From: Chlorokybus atmophyticus
Taxonomy: Eukaryota; Plantae; Mesostigma and Chlorokybus algae
Direction of reading: 5' to 3'
Assembly: GCA_009103225.1 (NCBI GenBank)
Contig: RHPI01003156.1
Coordinates: 1,328,552 to 1,392,551, forward strand
Length of the DNA: 64,000 nucleotides
A program made the translations under genes and the position numbers. How positions within the stretch are numbered: position 1 is the first letter of the stretch; each line of letters starts with the position of its first letter. The notes under the pieces were generated by a model. That model saw nothing but the letters and a program-made list of their open reading frames with translations, was not told the origin of the DNA and did not search any database. Positions 1-63,209 of the stretch are shown in pieces.

Positions 1-3000
1 AGCTCGAGCTGACGCCTGAAGAGAAGAAGCTTGAGGCGGGCTTGAAGTCGATCTGGCAGTCTATTCTAGGCGCTGAATCCATCCGACCCACTACAGACTT
101 CTTCGCGTCTGGTGCTGGGTCGATGGACGTCACACGCCTCACAGAGACCGTGCGTGCACAACTCGGTGTCGCAATCACCCCCGAACAGGTGCTGAGGACA
201 ACATCACAATGAATGCCTCAATAGCTACCCATCCGTCACTTGTTGGGTATACTACACTGGCGTGTACTTCCGAGCACGTGTGTATAGCATACTCTCTGCG
301 CTTCCGTTGCATACGCGTCTACAATAGTTCGTCTTGTGGGTTCAGGTGTTCATGAACACCAAGTTTGGGGACTTTGTGACGGCGGCAGTGCTTGCCTCGC
401 GCAGTGGTGGGGAGATTGTCGTGGAGTATGACGCGCATGAGGTGGAGGCGAATAGCATGAAGCTGCGGTTCCCGACACAATTGTTCATTGATGGGGAGTT
501 TTGCAACGCACTGTCTAGCAAGACGATTGATACTATTAATCCAACCACAGAGGAGGTCATTTGCCAGGTACGGGACGACACGTCCCTTGCGTTTTTGGCT
601 ATGCCCAAGGCCTGGGTGTGTGTGGCATTGCGTCATTGAGTGTGCACATGGCTGTATGCACTCTGTGCTATGCTGGTGTTGCTACCCTGCAGCTCTTAAA
701 CTCGCATGGCAATTGAAAGGATCTATGCATTGGACAGCGTAGTAAGTGCACACGCATGCACATGTACACATGCGCGCGTGCGCACGCACACAAACATACA
801 TGAATGTGCGTGCATGCATGCGTCATGCATGATGCTACTTGCAGTGGGTCAAGTAGGACGATGTGGCATGAAGCTGTTACGTCTGTATGGTGGCAAAGTG
901 CCAGAGTGCAGGGCAGCTACTTGGTTCCGATGCTTGCTATATTTTGACGGATGGTCATCACATGCGCAGGTACAAGCCGCTGGAGTTGAAGATGTGGACG
1001 TAGCTGTGAAAGCCGCCAAGAAGGCCTTTGAAACGGGCGAGTGGCGGTCAATGAATGCGCGCGACCGCGGCCGTTTGATGTACAAGCTCGCAGATGGCTT
1101 GGAGGCCGCCAAAGAAGAGCTTGCAACACTGGAGTCACTAGATTCAGGTACCATTTTTCTTCTTTTTGCTTATTTGCATATTGCATCACAACATTACATC
1201 ACCACAAGCAGTACACTTGCATTACTAATATCTGAGATAGGTGCGTCTTATTCAACGCATGCACTCATTTGTTGCTTCTTACAATGCATATGCTCAATAG
1301 GTGCTGTGTACACGCTCGCGGTGAAGACCCACATCGGCATGTCCATCGACACATTCCGCTACTTTGCGGGGCTTTGCGATAAGGTCAGCGGGCGCGTGAT
1401 ACCCATCAACCACGCCCGCCCCAACTACGACCTGTGCTTCACCAAGAAGGAGCCCATCGGCGTCGTCGGCCTCGTCATTCCCTGGAACTACCCCCTCATG
1501 ATGCTCGCGTGGAAAATGGCCGCTGCCCTTGCGGCTGGAAACACTGTTGTTCTCAAACCTGCAGAGGTACTAGATGTACATTGGGCATATACATGTATGC
1601 ATATGTCTGCTCACATGTTCCAGCAGTTACGTACACCCATATCTGCATCTGTATTACACATGTTTCTGCTCGCATGCACATGTGTACTGTGTTTTACAAT
1701 ATCCTTGTTTTCTGCGGATGTGCATACATTGATAGGTGTGTGATGTATTACATAACTTGTGTATAGCCATGTTGTAAGTATGCATGCATGCGTTTGCCTG
1801 CGTGTGTGTCTACATGCATGCAAACAAATATATGTAGGTACAACTTACTCATAAACACACACATGCGCACAGGTATGCACGCATGCATGCATATATGTAT
1901 GACCTTGTATGACATCCTTTGGTACAGCGTCTGCAGGATATGACCAAGCGTGTGTTCCAAGAAGCTAACAACCTTTGCCGCAGGTGACGCCATTGACAGC
2001 GTTGAAGTTTGCTGAGATATCCGCGCGGGTTGGTTTTCCGAAGGGCGTGATCAACATCCTTCCCGGTTTGGGTCCGGTGGCTGGTCAGGCGCTGGCGGAG
2101 CACCCGCTGGTATCGAAGCTGGGCTTTACGGGGTCAACGAAGGTCGGGAAGATTGTAATGGAGGCCGCCGCCAAGAGCAACGCCAAGCGCGTGAGTCTGG
2201 AGCTAGGTGGCAAGTCACCGCTTATCGTGTTCGCTGACGCTGACCTTACGCGCGCCGTGCGTAATGCCCTCGGCGCCTGTTTTTTTAACAAGGTCAGGGA
2301 TGCGCGAACCAACACGTTACTCACGCTTTCAAGCACGTGCATGCAAGTGTATGCATGCATACAAGCACGCCGTGTGCTGAAGCATATATGATGCCATGCA
2401 CATCGTGGTCTCTCTCGCATGCGTGCGTGCGTGCATCACACAGGCAGGCGCACACTCAACTGCAGCATGCTGTGGGACATGTTGCCATCGTTCATGGAAG
2501 TTGTTTGCATGTTTGCAGGCTTGTTGTATGGTGGAACGCTTGGGCTCTGATGCATGGTGTACTGCATGCACAGTGGCAGCATCCTTGTGAAGATTGTGAC
2601 GATTTGTGTTTGCAGGGCGAGAACTGCATAGCAGCCGGGCGCATATTTGTTGAGGATAGCATACATGACGAGTTCGTGCGATTGGTTGTTGAAGAAACGA
2701 AGAAAATAACCATTGGGGACCCTCTGGACAGGTCAGTTGTTGCTGCTGGCTTAATGGTTTGCTTTAACTGTGTGGAGTATTGTATAGGATAAGTGACCCG
2801 ACACTGCACACACAAGCTGCGTCATTGCAGGAGCGTGTCACATGGCCCTCAGAACCACAAAGCCCACCTGGACAAGCTCGTGGCGTACATCCAGAAGGGC
2901 GTGGAGGAGGGCGCAACCCTTGCCTATGGCGGGAAGCGCGTTGACCGAAAGGGCTACTTCTTGCAACCGACCGTTTTTACCAACGTCAAAGATGACGTCT

Positions 3001-3635
3001 TCATCGCAAAGGAAGAAAGGTGTGCCCAATCTCATGCCTGCCTTTGTGAGTTGACTGCACATCTTGTTTCCTAGCGACTAGCACTATGTCAACACACATG
3101 CGCACATCGCATGGGGCTGTGCGTGTCTGCGTATGTGCGCAGGCACCTGTGTGCATGTGTGTGTAAAAGTGCACACATGTGTTTGTCCATGCACGCCTAC
3201 TTGCACGCATGCCCAGGCATGCACATGCGCGCGCTGGCACACATGTATGCACATACACATGCAAACACACGCGCATATGTCTACTCGCTTCATGCGCACG
3301 AGCTTGCACAAGCACACTGAATCCTCATTCACTCTGGCAGTTTTGGTCCCATCATGATTATCTCCACATTCGATGGGAGTGTCGACACGGTGCTGCGGCG
3401 AGCCAACAACACCGACTACGGGCTTTCGTCCGGCGTGTTCACGCGCGACATCAACAAGGCGCTCCGTGTAGTGGACGGCCTTCAAGCAGGCACTTGCTAC
3501 ATAAACACGTACAACAAGACTGATGTCGCCTCGCCGTTTGGCGGCTTTAAACAGAGCGGCTTCGGCAAAGACTTGGGCGAAGAAGCGCTCAATGAATACC
3601 TGCAAACAAAAGCCGTTACCATTGAGTACTCATAG
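1..3635 (+). CDS. ALDH1L: 10-formyltetrahydrofolate dehydrogenase (ALDH1L-type): acyl-carrier-like domain plus ALDH domain; 5' partial, 8 exons in window
   Basis: Exons approx 1-188, 346-567, 970-1147, 1301-1566, 1984-2292, 2616-2731, 2831-3019 and 3341-3635 join with GT-AG sites. Carrier-domain motif [15 protein letters not shown] (phosphopantetheine Ser). ALDH1L-specific strings [32 protein letters not shown] (Glu), [13 protein letters not shown] (catalytic Cys), [10 protein letters not shown] and [24 protein letters not shown]. Confidence 0.93.
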
Positions 3636-4047
3636 GTACTCATTCAACAATCATTGCAGCCATTTGCAGCCACTTCACTTGTCGGTTGTTAGCCATTTGC
3701 AACATTGTTAACAAGTAACAATTATTGAACCATCAGCATAGATTTTGTTGGGTTGCTCAAGTCAGTAGTTTGCAGAGTGTGTGGGCTTTATTTTCATGCT
3801 GTATAGTTTAAGCAGCTTTGCGCAGGGTGTGTTACATAGCACATTTGCTGTCTTACAAAACGCCTCTTGTTGAGTGTTGTTTACTAGCTGGCAATGCCAC
3901 GTAAGATCAGAAGGGAGTGCTAGTGCATATGCTACGCGCTGATGAACAAAAGTAAAGCTGCTTCTTTACATAACTTAACCTCATCATTCTTTGCTCAAGT
4001 AACTGCGTGTCAACTTCAATTGTTGTACATGTTATGGTTTGCACGGG

Positions 4048-5684
4048 TCACAAGGATCCAAATGCACCCCTGCGTGCCGCTGTGACTATATCCGAGTCCC
4101 AATGCTCGTCTCCGCCCAACTTCTGCGTCATTTTGTCCAACGTTTCCTGTTGGGAAGGCATGTGAAGCCATGTCTGTATGTATGCATATGCGTGAGTGTG
4201 CATGTGCGTGCGTGCATGTGCATGTGCGTGCGCGCATGTGCATGTGCGTGTGCGCGTGCCTGCATGCGTGCCTGCATGTGGGGGCGCAGGTGGGTGTGGG
4301 GTTGTGCGGGTGAATTTGTGTGTACTGCACATGATGGATGATGCGTGTGTCGTGAGCGTGGCTGTGCTGATATGCTTCAGCTGACAAGGGCTCAGTGAAT
4401 CGTTCACATCATCAGTAGTGCTGCTGCTTGTTTATGAGATCCTTAACCTCGCAATACCTTCAACATGTCCGAGAACTCCTCCGCCATGTCCTCCATCTTC
4501 GACTTCATTTCCGACACCTAACATTTGCAACAAACAACAACACGTTTGTCGTATCCGAATGTGTCATCGCCGTTGCGTACTTTGTCATGCCCTCAACCAT
4601 TGTCATGCCAATGCTAATCAAACAGTGCGTTCAAGGCGCTCGCATGCGGTCATGCACAGATCTCGATATCACTCTCAACATTGAATGTTGCAATGTTGCA
4701 ATGCACTTACTGCACGCTCGTGTGCAGACTCTGCTGCCAGCTTCTCCTTCTTCAACTGCGCAATCGCAGAACTCTTCTGCGCTGTGAGACAAAGGATGTC
4801 AGTTCAGCAACAAAAGTATAACAGTACTCAGAGTGGCAACAACATCTTCAATAGCACCAACAACAACATCAGCAAACACACTATGATGAGCGCACCGGAC
4901 TCGGCCACCAGAGTAGTACAACGCGCCTCCAGATCAGTAATTTTCCCTGTCAAGCCCGCCTGCACCGACTGCGCTTGCCGCCTCATACTCGCACTGCCGT
5001 CGCAAATTGTTATTGTTCTTACTTTGATGACAACAACAACAACCACAAGAACAACAACGACACCACACCCACAACAGTCACAACTACTCACACAATGTCA
5101 TCTGCGTTTTTTTTCTGGTCTGTTATGTTCTTCTCCTGCAGCTCTATCTGCTCCCTCAGCCGCCTCTCTGAAGCCCTGCCCAGCAACATCTCCCTCTCCC
5201 TCTCCCCTGCCAACTATACGAGTTGAAAATTACGGAAGATAGCGCAGTGGCTTTGTCCGCGCTCACAACAATAACAACAACAACAACAACAACAACAATA
5301 CACGCAACACACACCTAGTTGCCATTTGAGCGTGGTGATGTCGGTTTCTGCCCTTTGCAGCTGAGCTTTGTATGCGGCGATCACAACCTCAGGATCAGCT
5401 GCACGCACAGAGAGGATCATTGGTACAAAGTCGACCTTTGAGTGGTTGTGGTTGTGGTTGTGGTTGTGGTTGAGGCGCACGCACGCGCACACGCAGTCAA
5501 AAGAGTGTATGTTGAGCAGGTGTTCTTTCACGAGTTCAGCAAACTTTGATCTTGGATGATTGATCTGCTGCACACCTCTCTCTGACGTATGTGTAGTATT
5601 GCTGATGATAAACTCACGCTTTTTCTGTGCTGTTTTGGGCCTCTTTGAGCTCGCTGTCGCCGGCCTCGGCCTCGTGCTGGCCAT
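4048..5684 (-). CDS. Coiled-coil protein similar to dynein regulatory complex subunit DRC12/CCDC153; 7 exons
   Basis: Manually spliced: MASTRPRPATASSKRPKTAQKKP|DPEVVIAAYKAQLQRAETDITTLKWQL|GEREREMLLGRASERRLREQIELQEKNITDQKKNADDIV|ASMRRQAQSVQAGLTGKITDLEARCTTLVAES|AQKSSAIAQLKKEKLAAESAHERA|VSEMKSKMEDMAEEFSDMLK|ETLDKMTQKLGG..GSL*. Intron phases are consistent. The C-terminal MEDMAEEFSDMLKETLDKM matches the remembered CCDC153 signature. Confidence 0.7.
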
Positions 5685-6032
5685 ACCCACATCACAACTA
5701 AAAGGCAGACTCGACAACACCCTTAATGACAAAAATTTCAAACACCACACAACATCAGAAAGCCGTGAGCTGAGTTGGTGCGTAAACAGGCAACAACAAC
5801 AACAACAACAACAACAGCATCACATGTTTGCGACACGTGAGTTGAACCCAGTTCCAGCCTCCAGCAAGCAATACACTCGCCGCGATCCGGATCATGCCTG
5901 ACTGTCACGATCGCGCCACACAATTGCCACGCGTAAGGATCGCCACGGCCAAGTTAGTTGCAGCGCTGTTGCTCAGCCGCTGCCTGCTGCAGTGGCAAGC
6001 GCGGCGTTGCAGATAGCGTTGTAGGACGCGTC

Positions 6033-6175
6033 AAACCCTACCTCGAGGTGGCGGCGGCAGCAGCCATAGCCGCAGCGGCAGTGCTGTGGTAGCCCTCTTT
6101 GCGCCTGGTTGTTGCCGGCGCCGGTGGCGGCGGCGGCGGCGGGTGCGGTGGGTTGGTGAGGAAGGAGGTTTAGGG
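6033..6175. promoter_or_regulatory. Telo-box motifs in the DRC12/RPL19 divergent promoter and 5' leader
   Basis: AAACCCTA at 6033-6040 and TTTAGGG at 6169-6175, just upstream of the RPL19 ATG at 6200. Confidence 0.6.
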
Positions 6176-6199
6176 AGGGTTGGACGGAGTTTGGACAAG

Positions 6200-7531
6200 A
6201 TGGTGTCCCTCCGCCTGCAGAAGCGCCTGGCGGCGTCGGTGCTGAAGTGCGGCAAGCGCAAGGTCTGGCTTGACCCTAATGAAGTCAACGAGATCTCCAT
6301 GGCCAACTCCCGTAAGTGTGACGTCATTCTCTCTTATGTTGGTTTTGGCTGTGGGGCTGCGCAGGTGTGTCGTCTATGACGCACAGTTCCTGCGCTTGCT
6401 GCCGATCTCCATAAAACGTTGCCCGCAGAGGCTAGCAACTCTGCAGTTGGCAGTACTTGTCATCATGGTGGGCTGCAGCCAGGCGTCTGCACCTCTGTAG
6501 CGAGTATCAGCTTGCTCATTGCTGCTGGTCCAGCAGCGAGCAGCAAGTCTGCTCAGCTTGACGTGGTTTCGGACTTAATTGAAGTGCGGAACACATAGGT
6601 TGACTGTGTTGATCCGCAGTTGCATGCCAGCACTGGTTGTGGCTTGTGGCGGCATACCGCAGCTGTGACGACCTCCTGGCTGTTGCACTGCATTTTGCTT
6701 TGTGCATATAGCTGTCAAAGCTTTGTGCATCCATTCACTAATACTCTTGCCATGGCAGGGCAAAACATCCGGAAGTTGATCAAGGACGGTTTCGTCATTC
6801 GCAAGCCCCAGAAGATTCACTCGCGCGCTCGCACCCGCCGTCTGCATGAGGCGAAGGCCAAGGGCCGTCACACTGGCCGCGGTACGGTACACTCCAACAT
6901 TGCACAATACTGCATATGTTGTATAATCTGCAGTGTTTCTCGTTTGTGTAGGATTTGGTTGCTTTAACTGTGGCTAGACACTGATGCTCTTTGCCCTGCA
7001 GGTAAGCGCAGGGGTACGCGGGAAGCGCGTCTGCCCACAAAGATCTTGTGGCTGCGAAGGCTTCGCGTGTTGCGCCGATTGCTTAGGAAATACCGTGACG
7101 CCAAGAAGATTGACAAGCACATGTACCACAACTTCTACATGCAAGTGAAGGGTAACGTGTTCAAGAACAAGCGTGTGCTCATGGAGACCATCCACAAGGC
7201 CAAGGCCGAGAAGGTCCGCGAGAAGACCATTTCCGACCAGTTCGAGGCACGCCGCGCAAAGAACAAGGCTTCGCGTACTCGTAAGATTGCACGCCGTGAG
7301 GAGCGACTTGCGGTAAGTCAATTGCGATAGTGGAGCGTGCGTGCTCATAAGACTGCTTACGTTGCCACATTCTGATGTCATTCTCCATGTGCAGGGCATT
7401 GCTGCTGATGTTGCCATGGATGCTCCCACCGGTCAAACAGGGTAAGCTAGCGCAATTTGCTCTTGTCCAAAGCCATTTCAGGCGCTTGTGCTTTGTGCTG
7501 AGTTCTATGTTTCTGTTGCAGGAAGAAGTAA
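6200..7531 (+). CDS. RPL19: 60S ribosomal protein L19 (eL19); 5 exons
   Basis: [38 protein letters not shown]|[22 protein letters not shown]..|[49 protein letters not shown]|[16 protein letters not shown]|KK*. Exons 6200-6311, 6759-6881, 7002-7312, 7395-7441 and 7522-7531. Confidence 0.97.
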
Positions 7532-37644: not shown

Positions 37645-38640
37645 TTAAACCTTGAAACCACGAGAGTTACGGCGACCACGAGCCTTCTCAAACTTGCGGC
37701 CCTTGGCCCGCACATAAGGCTTGGTGTGGCTGCCGGGCACACCAGGAGCGCGGCCGAAGTGGCGGGTAGCTTCGCGGGCATTCTTAGGCCCTCGCAGCAG
37801 CATGGTGTTGGCGCCGGTGGGTGCGATGAGAGCGAGCTGATCGAAAGTGAGGCACTCGCCACCGCTCTTCACAATGCGAGCGCGGGCAGTCTCCGTGAAG
37901 CGAAGCGCGCAGACCCGAAGCTTGGGCAGATCCTCTGTGTAGCGCACGTCGTCCGTGATGGTGCCCACCAACACCGCGATCTTGTCCTCCTTGCCAGACA
38001 TGAACTTGACCAGACGCCGCATTGACAGCGGCGGGTGGTTGGTTTTGCTCATGAACAACCTTTTGAGCACCGTCTCATTGAATGGGGACGTCGCTCGCCG
38101 AGCAAGGAACCGGTACAGCTTAACCAGCAGCTTCAGGTACACATTATCTGACTTTGGCGCCAAACGCTTGGTCTTTGTGTTGCGACCACCGGCCTTCAAA
38201 TCGATACCCTAACAAACACAGCCTTGGTAAACAACACATCCTACTGCCATACTGACCTCTGCAGACTAGAGTGTGTCTGTATTGGAAATAGTAACATCAG
38301 AAAACTACTTCAAAACGCCTTCAATTCTCACACAATCAAGCAAAGAACTGGACATTTCAAACTCTACCTAACACCTATCATGACACGAAGCCTAAGCTCT
38401 GCACAAGCTACAGACGGAGGGAGCAAGTGTGGGTGCGATGCGTGCCGATGGGCGCAATCGGCTCGCATGGCACCCACGCTTCACATTGGGGCCAGACTGA
38501 AACCCTAATCCACGCCCACCCATCCAGGCCAGGCCACACGCCGCGAGAATTGTGACAGCTCCCCAGCCCGTCCACGATCCAAGCTGACAACAACACCGTG
38601 CCAATTGCTCATCCCAGACAAGCATGCACCCACTCACCAT
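37645..38640 (-). CDS. RPL18: 60S ribosomal protein L18 (eL18); first coding exon is the ATG only
   Basis: ATG at 38640-38638 is followed directly by a GTGAGT donor. Acceptor at 38209, then [86 protein letters not shown]. Confidence 0.97.
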
Positions 38641-48734: not shown

Positions 48735-52476
<3,742 letters not shown>

Positions 52477-54009
52477 GGTGGAGAGAAGTGGTGAGAGAGA
52501 GAAGGGGAGAAGCGGCACGCGTGTGTCTCACACACGCAAGAAAGGACGTTTACCCGCTACTTTATGAAGTGCACGCTGCATACACTGCGCACCATACCAA
52601 GAGTGTGACATCAGCGCGCTATAATGTGATCATCATCATGTCAATACACTCCGCCCTCGTGCATGTATTCTTGTCGCTGAAGTACTGTGTGACAGTCTGT
52701 GTCTGTATGTCTCCTTGTTCCGCGCCTCGGACACAAATAATAACGCTATTTCGACTGGGGATGGGGCCACACGACAACCACGCGCTTGCCGCCACTGCCT
52801 GGGCATCTTAGCTTGAGGCCACCTAGTCAGCATCGGCAAAAAGGAACCAATGTCAGGGGTACGTACGTACGTGTGCAGCATTGCGCTGCAGTACAATTGG
52901 GCTGGCTCGACAGCATATTCATCAGCGTATTCATACATGCAATGCTCATGCATGCATGAGCCATGCATGCATGCCATCGCTATGGTCCGGTAACCGCCTA
53001 CCCCGCCAAATCCATGATAATATCCATTGATGCACATTATGTGCAGCACTTGTCTCGTCAGAAGGGGTACTCATGAATGCATACATAAGTACATAGTGTA
53101 CATGTACATACTGCACCAAAGGACTAATATTTGCCACGTGCCACACATACAGAGTACGGACATTTTATGATGGCGACGGGACAACTATCCGCGCCATCAT
53201 GATCAATGGATGCACTCATGCCGGCACGCCAAAGGGGAAAGTTTCTAAGCAATCGTGTCATCTTGCAAACGCGCATCCATACCGACAGCATGTCGGCGAC
53301 ATCGTTCTCGAGTGGTCGCGGATCTCCGTATCCTATCGCTAATGATGTCATTATGTATTATACTGTACTCTGCTGTATTTGTAATAAAGGCCGCGGAAAA
53401 CCTCACGGGTCGCGGAGGGGCCGCTGGCCCAGTATTGGGGCTGGCCCAGCCCGGCTGGGTACTTCCCCGGACGGGCCACCATGCACTGGCCAAAGTTTGC
53501 TGCACTGGCCACCACCCCAATCTTATGTTACAGGCCTGAATGTCACCCACGTCACGTGGCCACTACAAATCTCAAAGCTGATCTGCGTGCACTGAGAAAG
53601 GATGCGCTGACCAGGAAAGTGAGGAAGGGTCGACGGGTCGGCGGCGTGCTTCCCGCAAGCCGCCGACCCGTCAACCGTCGGCAGTTGCGCACTTCCGTCG
53701 GCGTCTTGATGCACATGCCGGAGTCGGAATCATCGACATCGACATCGACACATGGCCCGGGGCTCTGGACACCCGCGCCGGATCGCGACCGGCGGCATTG
53801 TCCGGGGATCGACCTGCGCGGCCAGGTGTGGGGCGCCGGCCGCGCGGTTAATCGCGCTGACCGCGCGTCGGCGGAGGGCAGTGCCGAGCGCCGACGAGGG
53901 CGAGCTGCGCCGACCAGCTTACAAAGTACACAAAGGTTGTATACGGTATGAATAAAGGTAAGTAGTTTACGCTATATATATTGATTGTAACTTGGCGTAG
54001 TGACATGAC

Positions 54010-54504: not shown

Positions 54505-57398
54505 TCAATCAACTCTACAACTGTCAATGCTCGAAAACTTGCCACATGGCTTCTGCTTCTGCTCATGCAAAAGATCCAGTTGTCGCGCTACCTCGTCTTC
54601 ACTTACACCCTCCTTCATTGTCAACTTTTTAATGGCTTTGTACAAGACATTGCACTTGCCATAATGCGTCTTCATTCTGTTGTCGGCAACGCGCCATGTG
54701 GTCTTGAACCTCGCCTTCAAATCGCGCACGGCAGGACCACCATCAATCCCCTCGCTGAACTCCTTCAAAACAGCTGCAACTGTTGGCAACTTCAGCTTCA
54801 ACTGGTATATGACAGGTACAGTGTGATGCAGCTGAATTGGTTGGTGTTGCATCGTCGTGTGCTTTTGGCTCGTTCGCTCGTGCTCGTTTGCGCGAAGGAG
54901 ACTTCGTAACATCAGGGTACATAGAATCTGAGGATGGTGTTTGCCTCTTTGGCAAAGGAACATTGAGACCGCTGTGAAGGTTCTCAATGAGGCTCGTGAC
55001 CGTGTTCAGCGCCTTGGTTTCTGCAAATTCTGTCTCTATAATGGAGTTTAAGCGTTGCACCTTGCTTGCGACATCAATACTGCGATCTGAAGTGGTGGTT
55101 TACAGCGCATAGCTCCCTTGCAGTATCAAGGCCAACTGTGAACAAGCAGTAGATAAGCATCATAACAAACCAATGTTGCATACACACGCATTTAAAAAAA
55201 ACCGACGCACACATATGCTTACCCGATCAGGTAAGTCTTGATACTCAGTTCGTTCCTCTTGCATGAACAAATTGTGCGCGATGACAACGGGAGTCGCCCA
55301 CTCCTTAAACTCCAAGTTGTTGAATATGTTGTGGTTGCAGATGGCGAGCGCATCAAGGCCTAGGATGCTCAAGCCCATTAATTGCACTCTGTCGCTGCGC
55401 ATAATGGCTACGTCCTGCAGCAAACAATGTAAAGACCGTGTTTTATTAGATATGCCTTGTATGGTTGATCTAATTGAGTGAACAAACCTGAGCAATCACG
55501 TTGCGAAAATTATCTAGCATCTGAAGATGCTTTCGGCTACCAAGTCCTTAACCCCTCCTTCCAAATTGCGTTGTGAAATAAAAGTTCAAAATGCATTGGT
55601 CACATTACAAGCATATTTTCAAGTTTGCAAACTAATAGTAGTACCTGCAGAACTTCGGCAAAGCGCTGGTGAAGATTGGGAAAAATCTTTTAGTGAAATG
55701 CGTCTGGTAATGTGAACCTGGACCGAGCAAGGATAAGTTTTGTGTCAAGGCTGCGAGGACCATAACCAGCCACCATTGCACATGTAGACACATGCAACTG
55801 TGTGCAGTATGATTCAATTGGTCATTGTTCCAGCGACCGTTCTGCTTTACTCCGTCTTTAGAAGCCCTGCACACAGCTAGGTTAACACACGCGCAAACAT
55901 GTATGTGTGCTATATGTACAGGGCATCAAAAATGGTTAATCATTGTTTATTAACGCTGCGTTGATGGCTTATTGCGCGAAGCCCTTGCCCGCAGCATGCA
56001 CATGTGCTGCCTGTGACAACTTTGCACGCTCTGCTAACTTCGCGCTGGCGTTGCCATTGTTGTCGGTGATGGGCTCACCTGGCTTCATGCCAGGAAACAC
56101 GTGCGTGCCATACCTGCACTCCACATTTTGTATGAATGTGGGCACAACGACAGCAGTAATGTGGACCACACACATGCCCGCAGTAACAACACATTTAGAG
56201 CAATTCAGCTCTTACCACGATTGCTTGCTTTTAAATGTGGGGAATGGCGCTTGAGCAAAATGAAACCTGTAAAAGAAATGGAAAGCTAAAGCGTTGTGGA
56301 AGTCCATGATGGGATTCCAATTGCGCAGGCCCCCAAAGTACTCCACATTGCCATTTACCACAGTAGCTTTTGGCATTAGTTTTTGACATGTACTTTTTTT
56401 TTTGCAGATGTCCAACCTCAAGAATTTAGAACCTCACCTTATTCATTGTGCCGGTGCGCGAGATGAAGCATAGCATGACCCCGTGGTCCGGACCTAAGAC
56501 TTTAATAGGGACGTCATACTTTTAGAAGTCACATTCCTCAACCGCGCGACATACATCCCCTCTGGATATACAAGTGTGCCGCATGATCAGGTTCAAGCTG
56601 TTGTGTAACACAAACTGGTTGCATTTGAAGTCATCGCAACCATGCAGTGGGGCCAACAATAGAACAGGGTCAGAAAGTTATACCGGGCATTCAAAGCAAC
56701 TTGCTTGATCTCATTGCTAGTACTGGCACTCTTACGCAGCCAATATTCACCCATGTTGAAGTAATCGTCCTGGGTGTACCCCTCAGCATCGGTGCCTGCT
56801 AGCCGTCCATGAAATTCCTTGAAAAGGACAATACAGTAAGCGCAATATTTCAACTCACACTCCTTGTATAATATATACTTCAAGCCCGTGCAAGTTCACC
56901 AATCTAACTTCTTGGCTATGTCGCTTATGCTTCGCCTTGCATCAATGAGCACTTGCTTGACAATAGGGCTGCGCCTACAGTAAAGAGGAGTAGTACCATG
57001 CCCATCCCTCATCGCCTGGTCCTTAGCTGCATCCTATACACTTTTGATAATGTTTTCCAACACACTCTATCTTCGATGCTGATGTGCCAGCATGAACTTC
57101 TTCACAGCCGCCACTTGAATACGCTCACCAAGCTGTTGCTGTATGCACCACTCATAAACACGACACGAAGTTGATGTTAACGTTACAGTAATACATTCCA
57201 ACGCGCATGCGTGCAACTTACCTTGTATTGCTTCAAGCCTCGATCATACTTGCTGCTTCCGTTCTTTGGGCGCTGCTTTTGCTTTCTGCTGAGCAAGTCA
57301 TCAATGTTGAGTGGTCGTGGATCATGTGCTGTAGCCTCCTCTTGCTGACCATCGTTGTTGTCAATATGGGTCTCCCCTTTGCTATTGTCATCGGTCAT
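54505..57398 (-). mobile_element. Decayed CryptonF-like DNA transposon gene: Ndc10-II-type tyrosine recombinase plus C-terminal GCR1_C DNA-binding domain, spliced, pseudogenised
   Basis: Spliced, stop-interrupted translation: AGTDAEGYTQDD; LNLIMRHTCISRGD (catalytic Arg); NGNVEYFGGLRNWNPIMDFHNALAFHFFYRFHFAQAPFPTFKSKQSW|Y; HVHAAGKG; KQNGRWNNDQL[frameshift]SY (catalytic Tyr)..MVAGYGP; LLQDVAIM; GCR1_C-like YQLKLKLPTVAAVLKEFSEGIDGGPAVRDLKARFKTTWR. Five in-frame TAA/TAG stops and at least two frameshifts. Confidence 0.8.
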
Positions 57399-59262: not shown

Positions 59263-60343
59263 TCATGCGCAGCTTGTCAACCCGTGGTGCCTCAGAACTC
59301 CTCCCCAAACCCCCTCCTCCTGTTCCTCCTCCAACGAGTCTTCCCCTTCAACGCCGGAGTCATCTTCATCCGCTGCCTCGCTCGCTGACAGTACAGCGGC
59401 TACTTCGTCCTTCAGCTTGAATGTCAGCGCCTCGCCGTGCACGCGCATGCGCTTGATGGTCGCTTTGAGAGTGACCACCTGCATTTGGTAATGCTGTAAG
59501 AGTGGCGTGCTGCCAGAGGACTAGCCCATCAGCATACACACGCTTACCTCGTCTTCCGCTTTGTTGCACTCCGGCAGGCAGACAGTCAGCCTGCCGCGCT
59601 GCTCTTGGTTCACTCTGACCAACATGACAATCTGCAAGCATACTGCTTAATTACCGCTGGAAACATTAAACTAGGTCATGGATTACCCGTTCGTGGTACT
59701 CCGCAGCTTCTGTTTTGCGACTTGTGAGCTCCCGCAAGTAGAAATAGGCTGTGCATTTGCGAGATTGGTCATGCTGTTCATGTGCATGACACTGGAGGTT
59801 GTGCATGAGGGTGTGCATGTCGTATTGACAATGTATGTCAAGTGCAAGATACTTGAGGCTGTGCATGTGCAAGATAAAAGAACCCTAGCATGTGGCATTG
59901 ACAGTGCATCGTAACCCACCTTGGTTATGCCAGTCTTGTTTGGTCCCTTCAATCATGTCGCCGTGGTCGCAGCTGCTGGTGGGTCGGATTTTCTTAGGGG
60001 CAGTATTGTGGTGTGCATTTGCCCACTCGGAGGGGGAGCCCTGTAAGATATCGCCCGAGTCACTGTTGTCATTGGATGTGCCCTTGGTAGTCTTGGTGGG
60101 GTTTGACACCGAGGACACCCCTCCGACACCCTGCCCGCCATGTGCGAACATGGAATTCATCCCGGACCTCGACCACGATGCCACTACGCCCTTGGTAGCG
60201 CCGCCAACGATCCTCCAAACGCCACATACCCTCGGCATCACGCCCCTGTAAGGGCATAGCCTGGCGGAGCTATCAATGGTGTTTTCATGCGCAGGGGGAC
60301 TGACATTGCCAGAGTTGTCAATGGTACGAACTGCCATTGCCAT
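59263..60343 (-). CDS. Spliced ORF of unknown function, divergent from the Plavaka transposase (putative second gene of the element); 4 exons, acidic C-terminus
   Basis: GT-AG joins keep frame: ..DMIEGTKQDWHNQ|AYFYLRELTSRKTEAAEYHER|IVMLVRVNQEQRGRLTVCLPECNKAEDE|VVTLKATIKRMRVHGEALTFKLKDEVAAVLSASEAADEDDSGVEGEDSLEEEQEEG..CA*. The start codon is uncertain (first in-frame ATG at 60343). Confidence 0.5.
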
Positions 60344-60519
60344 TGTACAAAGGTACCATTTCAATGGTACCTTTGTACAATGCCTAGACCTTTTGGCAAA
60401 GGCATCTTCGTACCATTGAAACGGTTCAATCAGAATATATATGTATATAAAAATATCCAGAGACTCACCCTGGACGTGCAATGGCTCGTTCGTACCATTA
60501 TAATGGTACGACGGAGCCA
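60320..60519. repeat. Cluster of six AATGGTAC motifs forming two hairpins or palindromes
   Basis: Perfect 20-bp inverted repeat 60341-60360 / 60363-60382 with a 2-nt loop. Perfect 20-bp palindrome CGTACCATTATAATGGTACG at 60491-60510. Single copies at 60320 and 60410. Confidence 0.9.
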
Positions 60520-60575
60520 GTGACTGGCGGCCAAGTTTCCCGCCTCTGGCATGCAAGGGTAGCGGTAGCGGTGGC

Positions 60576-60607
<32 letters not shown>

Positions 60608-60674
60608 GTGTGCGTGTTGCTGGATATGATGCAGGTTACATTGGCGACACCTGTGTCGACGTTAGTAGTGAGAT

Positions 60675-63209
60675 ATGGGAGTCCTTTGTCCGTATTGCCA
60701 CATGCGCTTCGCCACACGCAGCTCGGTCTACATGCACATTATTAGCAGCAGGGTGTGCAAGCAGATCAAGCTGTATGTTGGCCAGCGTTCATTACAGTAC
60801 GATGCGGGTCATGTTGAACCGGGGAGTTCAATCCAGGATGCTCACATGCTTGATGCTGAAGGATTCCTCTAGGAGACACACGCACAGCAGCAACAGCAGG
60901 AGGAGGAAATGAACGAGGGCTTTCGATGTGTGCGTGTGCCTGAGAAACCTGTGGCACGCCAACATGGAAGTGGAGGCGTCCCTTCGCACGCGTCGGAATC
61001 CAGGTGGTATGGCTCGGAGCATGCTCTTGCAGTGGCATTCGTGCAGTGCAACAACGGCCAAGGCCTGTCGGCCTCCGACATGGGGCGGATCATCAAGTGC
61101 ATCCGAAATGCACACTTCCTGACGGAAGAGCTCCAGTGGGAGACCGGTGTGCATGTGGCCAGCTACCTCCGGACCACGATTGCTTTCTCTCAGTCTGAGG
61201 TGTGTTCACGGTGTGCGGTGCATATGCTAAAAACCATCAGAGCCATGTCACATATGCACATGCGAGTGTGCTGCCGTATCAGAACTACGTGACGGCTGAC
61301 CTGCGCAAGCCTGGAGACCCTGAGAATCAGGACATCTGCGTCACATATATGCCGGCCAAGGTCTGTAAAATGCAGTACCTAATGCAGTATCGATGCAGTA
61401 TCTATTCTGAGGCCAGCATAGTAAGTAATGCTCTTGGTCGGAGCAGGTATGGCTCGCGCGGTTGTATGGCAATCCACATGCCGCCAATGGCTTCAATCTC
61501 CAGTACACTGGTGACGAGCACAGCTTTGGCCATCCTTCCACGGGCGATTGGTGGAAGGATGTGGAGGTGGATTTGAGGAGAGAGGTGGGGGAAGCGTCGT
61601 ACTTGGCGCCTGCCATTCTGTACAGTGACAAGACCACGCTGGACATCGCGGGCAAGCGCTCTGGCTACCCTCTGATGGCATCGCTTGCCAACTACAGTTG
61701 GGACATGTATGCTAGCAACATGGGGGTTGTAATGATAGCGCTTCTGCCGGTGGTTCACGCAGTGGCCGGGCATCCCACCTGGGCGCAGGGCAAGGAATCG
61801 ATCTCCATTCGGAAACGTGAGATTTTTCATGACGCTTTAAATGTAGTGTTAGGGGATGTGAAGCGGGCGAGTTGGGAAGGTCTGCAGCTCATCGACCCGA
61901 ATGGCATCGAGCGTCGTGTGTTTCCCGCGCTTGCCAACTACATCAGCGATTTGCAGGTAGTGGGCATGAATGGTTGTAACCGGATGCAGCCTGCCAGCAA
62001 ACAGTGCATGGAGGATGTTGTCAGTAAAATATCTGAGTTTGTCGTGTTGTAGGAGACTGCCACACTCGCACGCACTGTGTCGGGCAACCAAACACGACAT
62101 CCTTGCGATGTTTGTCTCGTCACCAAATCAGATCTGTTGGAGATGGATGAGGACTGGGAATTGAGAACCGAGGCCTGCTACACACCAGCAATACGTCAGC
62201 TGCGGGCGGACCTGCATAGCGGTGTTAGGAATGCACGCCAGACAGCCAAGCCTTTCAAAGAGCAGCACTCCATGCATGTCGAGGAGGTAATGGTCAAATT
62301 ATCGGCATTTGTGAGGATGAATGGCTTTTCGTGAAACCAGGCAATGTGGTTTGGCAACAAAATGCACTGTGGGGTTGGCGACAGTCGCGGGTGCCGGGAG
62401 CTGACTGCTACTCTCGTCTTGCCCCTGACGCAATGCATGTGCTGGGAGGCATCATTGACCACCTGCTTGCTGCTGTGTACGACGCCGCGAAGGAACGAAT
62501 GCGTCCATCCACGAGACAGATTCTGCAGGCCAGCCACGTCTTTGGTGTTGCTTTTGTGTTGAACACAAAAGCCAACAACACGTGCTCACGAGCAGATGTG
62601 CACAGGCTAGATGCATGCAAGGCGACTCTGCGGGTTTCGCACTTCAAGGCACCCACAAGCACAGTAGATCTCTTCCCGTCCGACCACTCCTTTTAGGTGG
62701 TGGAGAAAGTGGCGGTGCTGCAGCTGCTGCCGGTCCTCGCAGACGGTTTGCTGCTCGATAGTGAGGGCAACGATTTCTTTACCATTGCTGCCGCATCGCT
62801 TGCCCGGTGGAACAAGATGTTGCTCAAGGCGCATGAACACACAAAAGAGACCCTGACCACAGCCGACAACGAGCTGGCTGCCTTCAAAGCTGCAGTGTTG
62901 CATCCGCTACTGTCGTCATATTCTGCACAGAAATCAGGTTGGAAGATCGAGAAGATGCATCAGCTCACTCATTTTGGGCCGGCAATTGTCAGCAGTGGAC
63001 ACCTAGATTGGTTCAGCGCCAACCGCATCGAGCAGACGCACGCCCAAAATATCAAACGGTGGGCGCGTGGTGGCAACAACCGGGACTACCAGGCACGTAT
63101 CCTGAAGGCATGGAGCTGTGCGGAATATGTGAGAGAGGATGGCATGGTCGTGGATCCCGAGATGCACTCGGTCATGGCGCAGGCGCGGCAGCAGTGCTGT
63201 AATTGTTGA
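60675..63209 (+). mobile_element. Plavaka-type (CACTA/EnSpm-related) DDE transposase gene with N-terminal zinc finger, spliced, pseudogenised
   Basis: CPYCHMRF..YMHIISSRVC zinc finger; GHPSTGDWW; PAILYSDKTTLDIAGKRSGYPLMASLAN (first Asp); ALANYISDLQ|ETATLA (second Asp); HPCDVCLV; LAPDAMHVLGGII; WKIEKMHQLTHFGPAIVSSG..FSANRIEQTH..IKRWARGGNNRDYQARI (Glu). In-frame TAG at 60870 and 62694, and a likely damaged acceptor near 62358. Confidence 0.78.

Follow-up and report, generated by a model that had tools for sequence, protein, structure and literature searches.

10-Formyltetrahydrofolate dehydrogenase (ALDH1L) has been studied almost wholly as an animal enzyme, namely as a folate regulator in liver, a marker of astrocytes and a tumor suppressor, and accounts of its evolution usually stay within animals. 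To our knowledge, ALDH1L is regarded as mainly an animal enzyme and is missing from the land plant ALDH family set. A reading of 64,000 nucleotides of genomic DNA from the streptophyte alga Chlorokybus atmophyticus (the window; contig RHPI01003156.1), made without database searches, described an animal-type ALDH1L gene at the start of the stretch. Such a gene raises the questions of whether it belongs to the alga, whether it encodes a complete enzyme and where it came from. On the evidence presented here, it is likely that the window contains about two-thirds, at the 3′ end, of a nuclear gene that is native to the alga, is expressed and encodes a complete ALDH1L-type 10-formyltetrahydrofolate (10-formyl-THF) dehydrogenase, and that this gene is of old eukaryotic origin.

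Gene Structure and Transcripts

Eight exons separated by GT..AG introns lie at window positions 3–3635 (+ strand), and together they encode the ALDH1L carrier domain and the whole ALDH domain, with the reading frame kept over the total length. The exons were searched one at a time, and full-length analyses were run on a deposited protein model of 903 residues (P0339), a single product. Exon 1 (3–188) encodes the end of a linker and most of the carrier (phosphopantetheine-binding) domain, including the serine of the GAGS motif; it matches P0339 residues 324–385 exactly and was recognized by the Pfam PP-binding profile (4.6e-10). The best match for this exon among solved structures was the carrier domain of ALDH1L1 (2cq8/7rlt, residues 314–365). 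In the 902-residue ALDH1L1, window base 3 falls at residue 314, and the gene extends upstream of the window. Intron 1 (189–345) is in phase 0, and its joint, 185>343 (cut +3), was present in transcript contigs from both of the runs described below. Exon 2 (346–567; residues 386–459), which matches P0339 exactly and aligns with ALDH1L homologues, runs from the last part of the carrier domain through the inter-domain linker into the beginning of the ALDH domain. It is followed by intron 2 (568–969), a phase 0 intron located after EEVICQ, the joint of which was also found in transcripts.

The remaining exons cover positions 23–461 of the 461 positions in the Pfam Aldedh profile. Exon 3 (970–1147; residues 460–519) ends past the first base of the Gly519 codon and is supported by Pfam (1.6e-12) and by a transcript joint, as is exon 4 (1301–1566; 3.5e-27; joint 1564>1982, cut +2). 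Intron 4 (1567–1983), also in phase 0 and confirmed by a transcript joint, separates KPAE from VTPL. Exon 5 (1984–2292; 5.1e-36) contains the GFTGST cofactor-binding stretch and SLELGGKSP, which includes the equivalent of the general base Glu673; its best matches among solved structures were ALDH1L1 entries at 134 bits, compared with at most 118 bits for other ALDHs. For exons 1 and 5, the ALDH1L1 entries at the top of the structure matches were those of rat, human and pig. The equivalent of the nucleophile Cys707 is located in the GENCIAAGR stretch of exon 6 (2616–2731), which was assigned by Pfam and by alignment to 7rlt. Exon 7 (2831–3019) encodes residues 744–805 plus split codons (5.9e-16; transcript joints), and the last coding exon, exon 8 (3341–3635; joint 3017>3339), ends with VTIEYS and a stop codon and extends the Aldedh match (4e-31) to the final profile position. 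The 3′ UTR starts at position 3636 and extends to at least position 3900. Thus, the fusion of a GAGS-containing carrier domain to an ALDH1L-type ALDH domain, as originally described, is borne out by Pfam and by the structure matches, and the three intron sites that had been named (between KPAE and VTPL, FFNK and GENC, and AKEE and SFGP) are all correct.

All seven exon joints were found in spliced transcript contigs from runs X1 and X2, which come from two independent studies with the same organism label. One spliced X2 contig of 3015 nt covers the gene from 1063 nt upstream of the window into the 3′ UTR, where it reaches position 3824; an X1 contig reaches at least position 3900. The window exons match P0339 exactly, save for a gap of six residues. 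Here, the model places the donor site of exon 4 18 nt upstream, so that VLKPAE is missing, and the transcript joint supports the longer form, which gives a full protein of about 909 residues. The first 323 residues are encoded upstream of the window and were read in P0339, with support from the length of the transcript contig, rather than in genomic DNA. The 1063 nt by which the contig extends upstream are accounted for by 967 nt of coding sequence and a 5′ UTR. P0339 is already public in EukProt, and it is a singleton at 90% identity.

Domain Architecture and Predicted Function

Pfam analysis of P0339 identified Formyl_trans_N (9e-38; residues 6–179), Formyl_trans_C (4.8e-14; residues 211–315), PP-binding (2.3e-10) and Aldedh (1.5e-165), with all three modules on one polypeptide and, by the single spliced X2 contig, on one mRNA. 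An upstream adenylation domain of the nonribosomal peptide synthetase (NRPS) type, which would have spoken against the initial reading, is rejected by the presence of the two formyltransferase domains in the model, with which the length of the transcript contig agrees. An alignment of P0339 with pig ALDH1L1 (7rlt) extends from end to end (residues 6–902 to 2–902; 1189 bits). Vertebrate ALDH1L1 and an amoebozoan ALDH1L are each 64% identical to the algal protein, compared with 45–51% for ordinary ALDH1/2 proteins. His106, Asp142, Ser354, Glu673 and Cys707 are all conserved in the alignment with the pig enzyme, in which Ser354, the phosphopantetheine site, is the serine of GAGS.

The structures available for ALDH1L1 comprise the full-length enzyme (7RLT/7RLU), the ALDH domain (2O2P), the hydrolase domain (1S3I/2BW0) and the carrier domain (2CQ8). 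By homology with this enzyme, the N-terminal hydrolase domain of the algal protein, with its equivalents of His106 and Asp142, would take the formyl group off 10-formyl-THF; a 4′-phosphopantetheine arm on the GAGS serine would then ferry it to the C-terminal ALDH domain, where the equivalents of Cys707 and Glu673 would oxidize it to CO2 with the reduction of NADP+. The predicted net reaction is 10-formyl-THF + NADP+ + H2O → THF + CO2 + NADPH. The gene for the 4′-phosphopantetheinyl transferase that would activate the carrier is not located in the window. Given that P0339 has no N-terminal extension and starts just four residues ahead of the conserved KxAVIGQS start, the deposited start leaves no space for a transit peptide, and the protein is probably cytosolic.

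Phylogenetic Placement and Distribution

In the family tree, the ALDH1L clade that includes the window gene was separated from five ALDH1/2-type outgroups with 100/100 support. The 18 named animals all fell in a clade (100/99.7) from which the window gene was excluded. The gene grouped beside amoebozoan and unplaced metagenomic sequences, the amoebozoan pair being nearest by path, but the base of the ALDH1L clade was a polytomy of the window gene, the amoebozoan pair and the animals, so that the window gene, which has a long terminal branch (0.4–0.5), has no supported sister. The description “animal-type” is an overstatement, in that the gene lies outside the animal clade and that Amoebozoa also have the enzyme. 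Given the position of the gene outside the animal branch, the ALDH1L enzyme is probably much older than animals.

The known distribution of ALDH1L is patchy, comprising animals, Amoebozoa, a few unplaced metagenomic sequences and Chlorokybus. Had ALDH1L been common and already annotated across green algae, the initial reading would have lost its point; no other green algal ALDH1L was present among the matches listed in three large protein searches (the best 120 of each, mostly animals), and no paper was found on ALDH1L in algae, Viridiplantae, Chlorokybus or Acanthamoeba. When P0010 and a metagenomic amoebozoan sequence (P0184) were used as seeds, the matches listed were almost exclusively from animals, and a profile search listed the window's own protein and nothing closer. 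Of the best 150 matches to exon 5 in a search of representative sequences, only 15 were of the ALDH1L type, all with 71% identity or less, and overall no relative closer than ∼70% identity was found. A scan of metagenomes yielded 30 loci, with identities of at most 65% across the full length and at most 75% for the best segment. Those loci that contain introns have animal-type intron sites, with the exception of one amoebozoan-like locus (L017). A look-up in the ESM Atlas returned arthropod and chordate clusters only. The part comprising Formyl_trans_C, carrier and linker had no relative in 185,579 prokaryote genomes by a pattern method that finds close relatives only.

Intron Positions and Genomic Context

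Intron positions were compared with those of animal genes, a comparison that the sequence-only reading had proposed, and with those of L017. The animal genes contain 14–19 introns in the compared region, and L017 contains ten short introns (47–83 nt), eight of them at sites other than those of the alga. Intron 2 shares its site and phase with L017, and intron 4 shares both with L017, Trichoplax (L001) and the sponge Ephydatia (L002). Accordingly, one of the seven window gene introns is shared with each of these basal animals and none with Saccoglossus, and five of the seven occur at sites absent from the animal and amoebozoan genes compared. For sets of seven and ten introns, two shared sites have a probability of 0.0006 under a uniform distribution of sites and of 0.05 when just one site in ten is taken as eligible. 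The shared sites lean toward old eukaryotic ancestry over recent transfer.

Several features of the locus mark the gene as native, as had been supposed. The codon usage of ALDH1L is within the range of neighboring genes (GC3 of 0.68; RSCU correlation, r = 0.59). There are no runs of N before window position 50,377, and hence none between ALDH1L and a neighboring eL18 gene, the best structure matches of which are plant ribosomes. Unspliced pieces of ALDH1L that cross exon-intron borders were present in two other, DNA-like runs. A chimeric join was looked for and none was seen: the spliced contig spans the gene, unspliced DNA pieces exist elsewhere and the first 50 kb are free of N gaps. The suggestion that the ALDH1L introns do not differ in composition from those of neighboring genes is only roughly correct (GC of 0.48 versus 0.50, both CA/TG-rich), but hexamers of the GCATGC type occur in the former at 3.5 times the density found in the latter.

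Alternative Explanations

The restriction of known ALDH1L to animals and amoebae would suit contaminating animal or amoeba DNA, or its chimeric assembly with algal sequence, and the two DNA-like runs that hold pieces of the gene do bear other organism labels (B and C). This explanation is nevertheless highly improbable, and was rejected on the basis of the stretch without N runs to a plant-type eL18 gene, the neighbor-like codon usage and the exact splicing seen in two independent studies. A contaminant of animal origin would also be at odds with the placement outside the animal clade and with an intron pattern of which a single site is shared with animals, and one of amoebozoan origin with the short introns of the amoebozoan gene; nothing more than ∼70% identical was present in the collections searched. 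An old transfer of genomic DNA between eukaryotes, for example from an amoeba-like or other heterotrophic protist to ancestors of the alga, followed by domestication to host codon usage and gain of new introns, deserves more weight but still appears rather unlikely. A lone green lineage ALDH1L in a very patchy distribution fits a single acquisition as well as massive loss, the amoebozoan pair provides the nearest rows by path, and both shared intron sites occur in the amoebozoan-like gene. Moreover, the roughly equal distance to amoebozoan and animal sequences (64–69%) represents high identity for a split near the eukaryotic root, although this family evolves very slowly, sponge and vertebrate proteins being just ∼65–70% alike. 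The transfer is further opposed by the failure of any donor group to emerge as a supported sister, by the long terminal branch, by the five private introns and by codon usage indistinguishable from that of the neighbors, and basal animals, too, have one of the shared introns, as would be predicted for an ancestral intron. Of the two origins initially put forward, an ancient enzyme lost in land plants or a horizontal acquisition, the shared intron sites lean toward the former, while the base of the clade remains polytomous. Most likely, this is an old eukaryotic gene that was fused and intron-bearing before plants split from animals and amoebae, and that was kept in the alga and lost from land plants. 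We regard the chances as about even that the shared ancestor of plants, animals and amoebae, near the last eukaryotic common ancestor, already had the three-module fusion together with some of its introns, and that almost all green and red lineages then lost it.

The function of the algal protein is predicted from its sequence, and another job for the ALDH1L architecture is conceivable, either as a general NADP+-dependent aldehyde dehydrogenase or as a hydrolase-only 10-formyl-THF deformylase with an idle carrier arm. In favor of this, animal ALDH1L1 also oxidizes short aldehydes in vitro (PMC7264889). Such a role is improbable given that none of the five residues defining the three coupled steps is altered, that carrier and linker are of full length and that, with 64% identity across 900 residues, the entire assembly must have been under strong purifying selection.

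Relation to Known Enzymes

The route normally assigned to plants is the PurU-type 10-formyl-THF deformylase, which is found in plants and bacteria, for example as the Arabidopsis deformylases. PurU acts on the same substrate as ALDH1L and likewise regenerates THF, but it has neither a carrier nor an ALDH domain and releases formate without yielding NADPH, whereas the algal ALDH1L would yield CO2 and NADPH. At least one green lineage organism may thus oxidize 10-formyl-THF to CO2 with a gain of NADPH, beyond the release of formate by PurU. If the gene is ancient, an early-branching streptophyte alga would still run the “animal” route, turning excess one-carbon units into CO2 and NADPH, and early in the plant lineage this route would have existed next to, or earlier than, the photorespiration-linked PurU formate route. 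The gain is incremental in that the enzyme family and its chemistry are already well known. A complete, expressed and intron-bearing copy that is found in a streptophyte alga and falls outside the animal clade, taken together with the amoebozoan copies, gives this natural fusion of three genes a much earlier origin, and intron maps with wider sampling now make ancient origin and transfer testable against each other. In addition, the alga would allow the swinging-arm mechanism to be studied outside animals.

Ordinary ALDH1/ALDH2 proteins, including plant ALDH2 (maize RF2C, ZmALDH), share the fold and the catalytic Cys and Glu of the algal C-terminal domain, but lack the formyltransferase and carrier domains, and differ in the identity and tree placement given above. 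The amoebozoan ALDH1L sequences (P0254 of Luapelamoeba hula, EukProt EP01087; metagenomic P0184; genomic locus L017) are non-animal, contain all of the domains and are 64–69% identical to the algal gene; L017 shares two intron sites with it in the same phase, without a supported sister relation. Vertebrate cytosolic ALDH1L1 matches the algal protein in its four Pfam domains, in their order and in having no N-terminal leader, and its five key residues are kept in the algal protein, but the algal gene falls outside the animal clade and differs from it in nearly all of its gene structure. Vertebrate mitochondrial ALDH1L2 has the same architecture and a similar identity to the algal protein, but carries a mitochondrial leader of ∼20 residues that the algal model lacks. 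In the tree, ALDH1L1 and ALDH1L2 form a vertebrate-only pair.

Structure of the ALDH1L Gene and Its Full-length Product

Inspection of window positions 1-4500 and their ORFs gave eight coding exons on the forward strand, at 3-188, 346-567, 970-1147, 1301-1566, 1984-2292, 2616-2731, 2831-3019, and 3341-3635. All seven introns have GT..AG borders, and the 1761 coding bases keep frame up to a stop codon at 3633-3635. In a Pfam domain scan run exon by exon, exon 1 was assigned as a phosphopantetheine-binding carrier domain and exons 3-8 tiled the Aldedh profile between position 23 and the last position. The best solved-structure match of exon 1 was the carrier domain of ALDH1L1, with NRPS carrier proteins ranking behind it, and exon 5 best matched rat, human, and pig ALDH1L1 (134 bits; other ALDHs, ≤118 bits). 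The fusion of carrier and ALDH domains read from the sequence alone is correct, as are the three intron sites named in that reading.

Base 3 of the window aligns with residue 314 of ALDH1L1, which has 902 residues. A profile search with three non-animal homologues and the window exons, aligned as one row per exon, returned as the protein encoded by the window P0339, a 903-aa deposited model from EukProt that is a singleton at 90% identity. The gene model is already public, apparently without a name. Residues 324-903 of P0339 cover the exon translations, exactly for seven of the eight exons; exon 1301-1566 matches except for its final residues. Here, the donor in the model lies 18 nt before that seen in transcripts (window 1549-1566), so the six conserved residues VLKPAE are missing, and the true product should be 909 rather than 903 aa.

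The sequence-only reading had proposed looking upstream for a formyltransferase domain and a targeting peptide. According to P0339, the upstream part encodes Formyl_trans_N (residues 6-179) and Formyl_trans_C (residues 211-315), followed by PP-binding (residues 337-397) and Aldedh (residues 443-898). The deposited model has no leader peptide, because only four residues precede the point at which the conserved sequence of the cytosolic animal enzyme begins.

Transcription and Integrity of the Locus

Two RNA-like public data sets from separate studies of the same organism each contained 0.44 of the sampled words, approximately the exonic fraction. Transcript contigs lacked all seven introns, which were cut exactly at the predicted GT..AG borders. 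One 3015-nt contig starts 1063 nt upstream of the window and ends at base 3824. Given that the 323 upstream residues of P0339 require 967 nt ahead of window base 1, ∼96 nt remain within this contig for a 5′ UTR, so the protein model and the transcript agree. Unspliced pieces crossing exon-intron borders at ≥99% identity were present in two further runs (e.g. 2960-3272 and 3076-3429). Thus, the ALDH1L gene is transcribed and spliced, and its genomic arrangement has been seen independently; neither the transcript contigs nor the unspliced pieces gave any sign of a chimeric join.

The host was assessed from a neighboring gene. A large exon of ribosomal protein eL18 (37648-38199, reverse strand) best matched solved plant ribosomes (wheat, tobacco, tomato, and Arabidopsis; 289-317 bits), well above those of animals (∼245 bits), and this lends independent support to a green-lineage host. 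Both in GC3 (0.68; neighbors, 0.47-0.73) and in codon-usage correlation with eight neighboring coding stretches (r = 0.59; neighbors, r = 0.36-0.72), the ALDH1L exons lie within the neighbor spread. Apart from single bases at 50377 and 52256, the window has no Ns. Taken together, the sequence-only observation of a native-looking ALDH1L-type gene in a green-lineage genome is borne out and its interpretation supported, with two corrections: the gene model is already public, and the label “animal-type” needs qualifying (see below). The further claim that its introns resemble those of neighboring genes in composition holds broadly, but GCATGC-type hexamers are unusually dense in them. GCATGC/TGCATG-type hexamers reach 26.7 per kb in the seven introns (189-3340); the window as a whole has 6.0 per kb, and the sequence between the exons of the aminoacyl-tRNA synthetase gene has 7.6 per kb. 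At 4170-4300 there are similar low-complexity tracts rich in CA/TG/GCATG.

Relatives and Origin of the Gene

P0339 shows full-length identities of 64% to vertebrate ALDH1L1 and 64% to the ALDH1L protein of Luapelamoeba hula, an amoebozoan (P0254). Identities are 67-71% to a few metagenomic sequences and 45-51% to ordinary ALDH1/2. Nothing closer was present among the matches listed from a 5.8-billion-cluster protein collection or a 1.84-billion representative library, in JGI metagenome contigs, or in prokaryote genomes, for which the query was the middle part specific to ALDH1L. Literature searches brought up no mention of ALDH1L in algae or plants. The family is known; the lineage of this gene is unexpected.

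With ALDH1/2-type sequences as the root, a tree of the ALDH domain gave the ALDH1L clade support of 100/100 and placed the window gene and an amoebozoan pair outside an 84/95 clade containing all animals. In the full-length tree, a 100/99.7 branch separated all 18 named animals and one cnidarian-like metagenomic row from the window gene and four other rows, two of them amoebozoan-type and two metagenomic and unplaced. This placement rules out that the gene came recently from an animal. Neither tree gives a supported branching order for the non-animal lineages. The label “animal-type” is not strictly apt, because the gene lies outside Metazoa and Amoebozoa share the enzyme. The metagenome ALDH1L proteins P0151 and P0010, which the full-length tree places outside the animals, show that further non-animal lineages carry the enzyme. 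The carrier domain most similar to that of the window gene is that of P0151 (60%).

For a comparison of intron positions, the genes of Trichoplax, Ephydatia, and Saccoglossus were mapped to their exact exon borders and projected, with the window exon rows, onto one alignment. The animal genes have 14-19 introns in the carrier-plus-ALDH region, and the sole window site coinciding with them is intron 4 (KPAE|VTPL, phase 0), common to Trichoplax and Ephydatia. A metagenomic amoebozoan-like locus, L017, is closest to Luapelamoeba. Its ALDH1L copy (3001-6533) has 13 short introns of 47-131 nt, one of them GC..AG (6020-6102), with ten in the carrier-plus-ALDH region. It shares with the window gene the site and phase of intron 4 and of intron 2 (after …ICQ/…IAQ), and with animals a phase-1 site, DRK|G. 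For two coincident sites among 7 × 10 introns, P is 0.0006 when placement is uniform and about 0.05 when only a tenth of sites can take introns. Such partly shared, mostly private introns are to be expected of a eukaryotic gene that is old, already bore introns, and has since lost and gained them in individual lineages; an old DNA-level transfer between eukaryotes is also a possible origin.

Predicted Function

The mechanism of animal ALDH1L is summarised in PMC7264889. By homology, the hydrolase domain should remove the formyl group from 10-formyl-THF, and the phosphopantetheine arm should then take it to the ALDH active site, where its oxidation to CO2 should reduce NADP+. Residues 6-902 of P0339 align with residues 2-902 of pig ALDH1L1 (7rlt), and His106 and Asp142 of the hydrolase domain, Ser354, which bears the phosphopantetheine arm, and Glu673 and Cys707 of the ALDH domain are all conserved. 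That these five key residues and the full linker are kept supports a coupled reaction; we infer activity, cofactor preference, arm loading, and cytosolic location. For land plants, the established route of 10-formyl-THF deformylation is through PurU-type enzymes. Whereas these release formate, the predicted algal enzyme would release CO2 and yield NADPH, so that the alga may possess an extra one-carbon exit.

Other Genes and Elements

At 30-34 kb, the reverse strand carries a condensin Cnd1-like gene. An ABC-transporter ATPase gene (40.7-42.4 kb, from 40768, reverse strand) and a large class-I aminoacyl-tRNA synthetase gene (42.4-47.6 kb, to 47600, forward strand; tRNA-synt_1, 1.3e-80) are arranged head to head. 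A haem-peroxidase gene with a Pfam peroxidase domain and catalase-peroxidase-like motifs (50246-52518, reverse strand) has introns that consist of long (CT)n/(AG)n microsatellites and appear as SLSLSL… in ORF lists; both single Ns of the window fall within its range. An ORF with a GCR1_C DNA-binding domain (54505-54987, reverse strand; 9.5e-14) sits where the window is richest in AT (54-56 kb, GC 0.44) and may be a mobile-element remnant. At the window end, a Plavaka (KDZ-type) transposase-domain ORF (61462-62052, forward strand; 5.7e-23), among ORFs at 59885-63209, is probably part of a DNA transposon copy.
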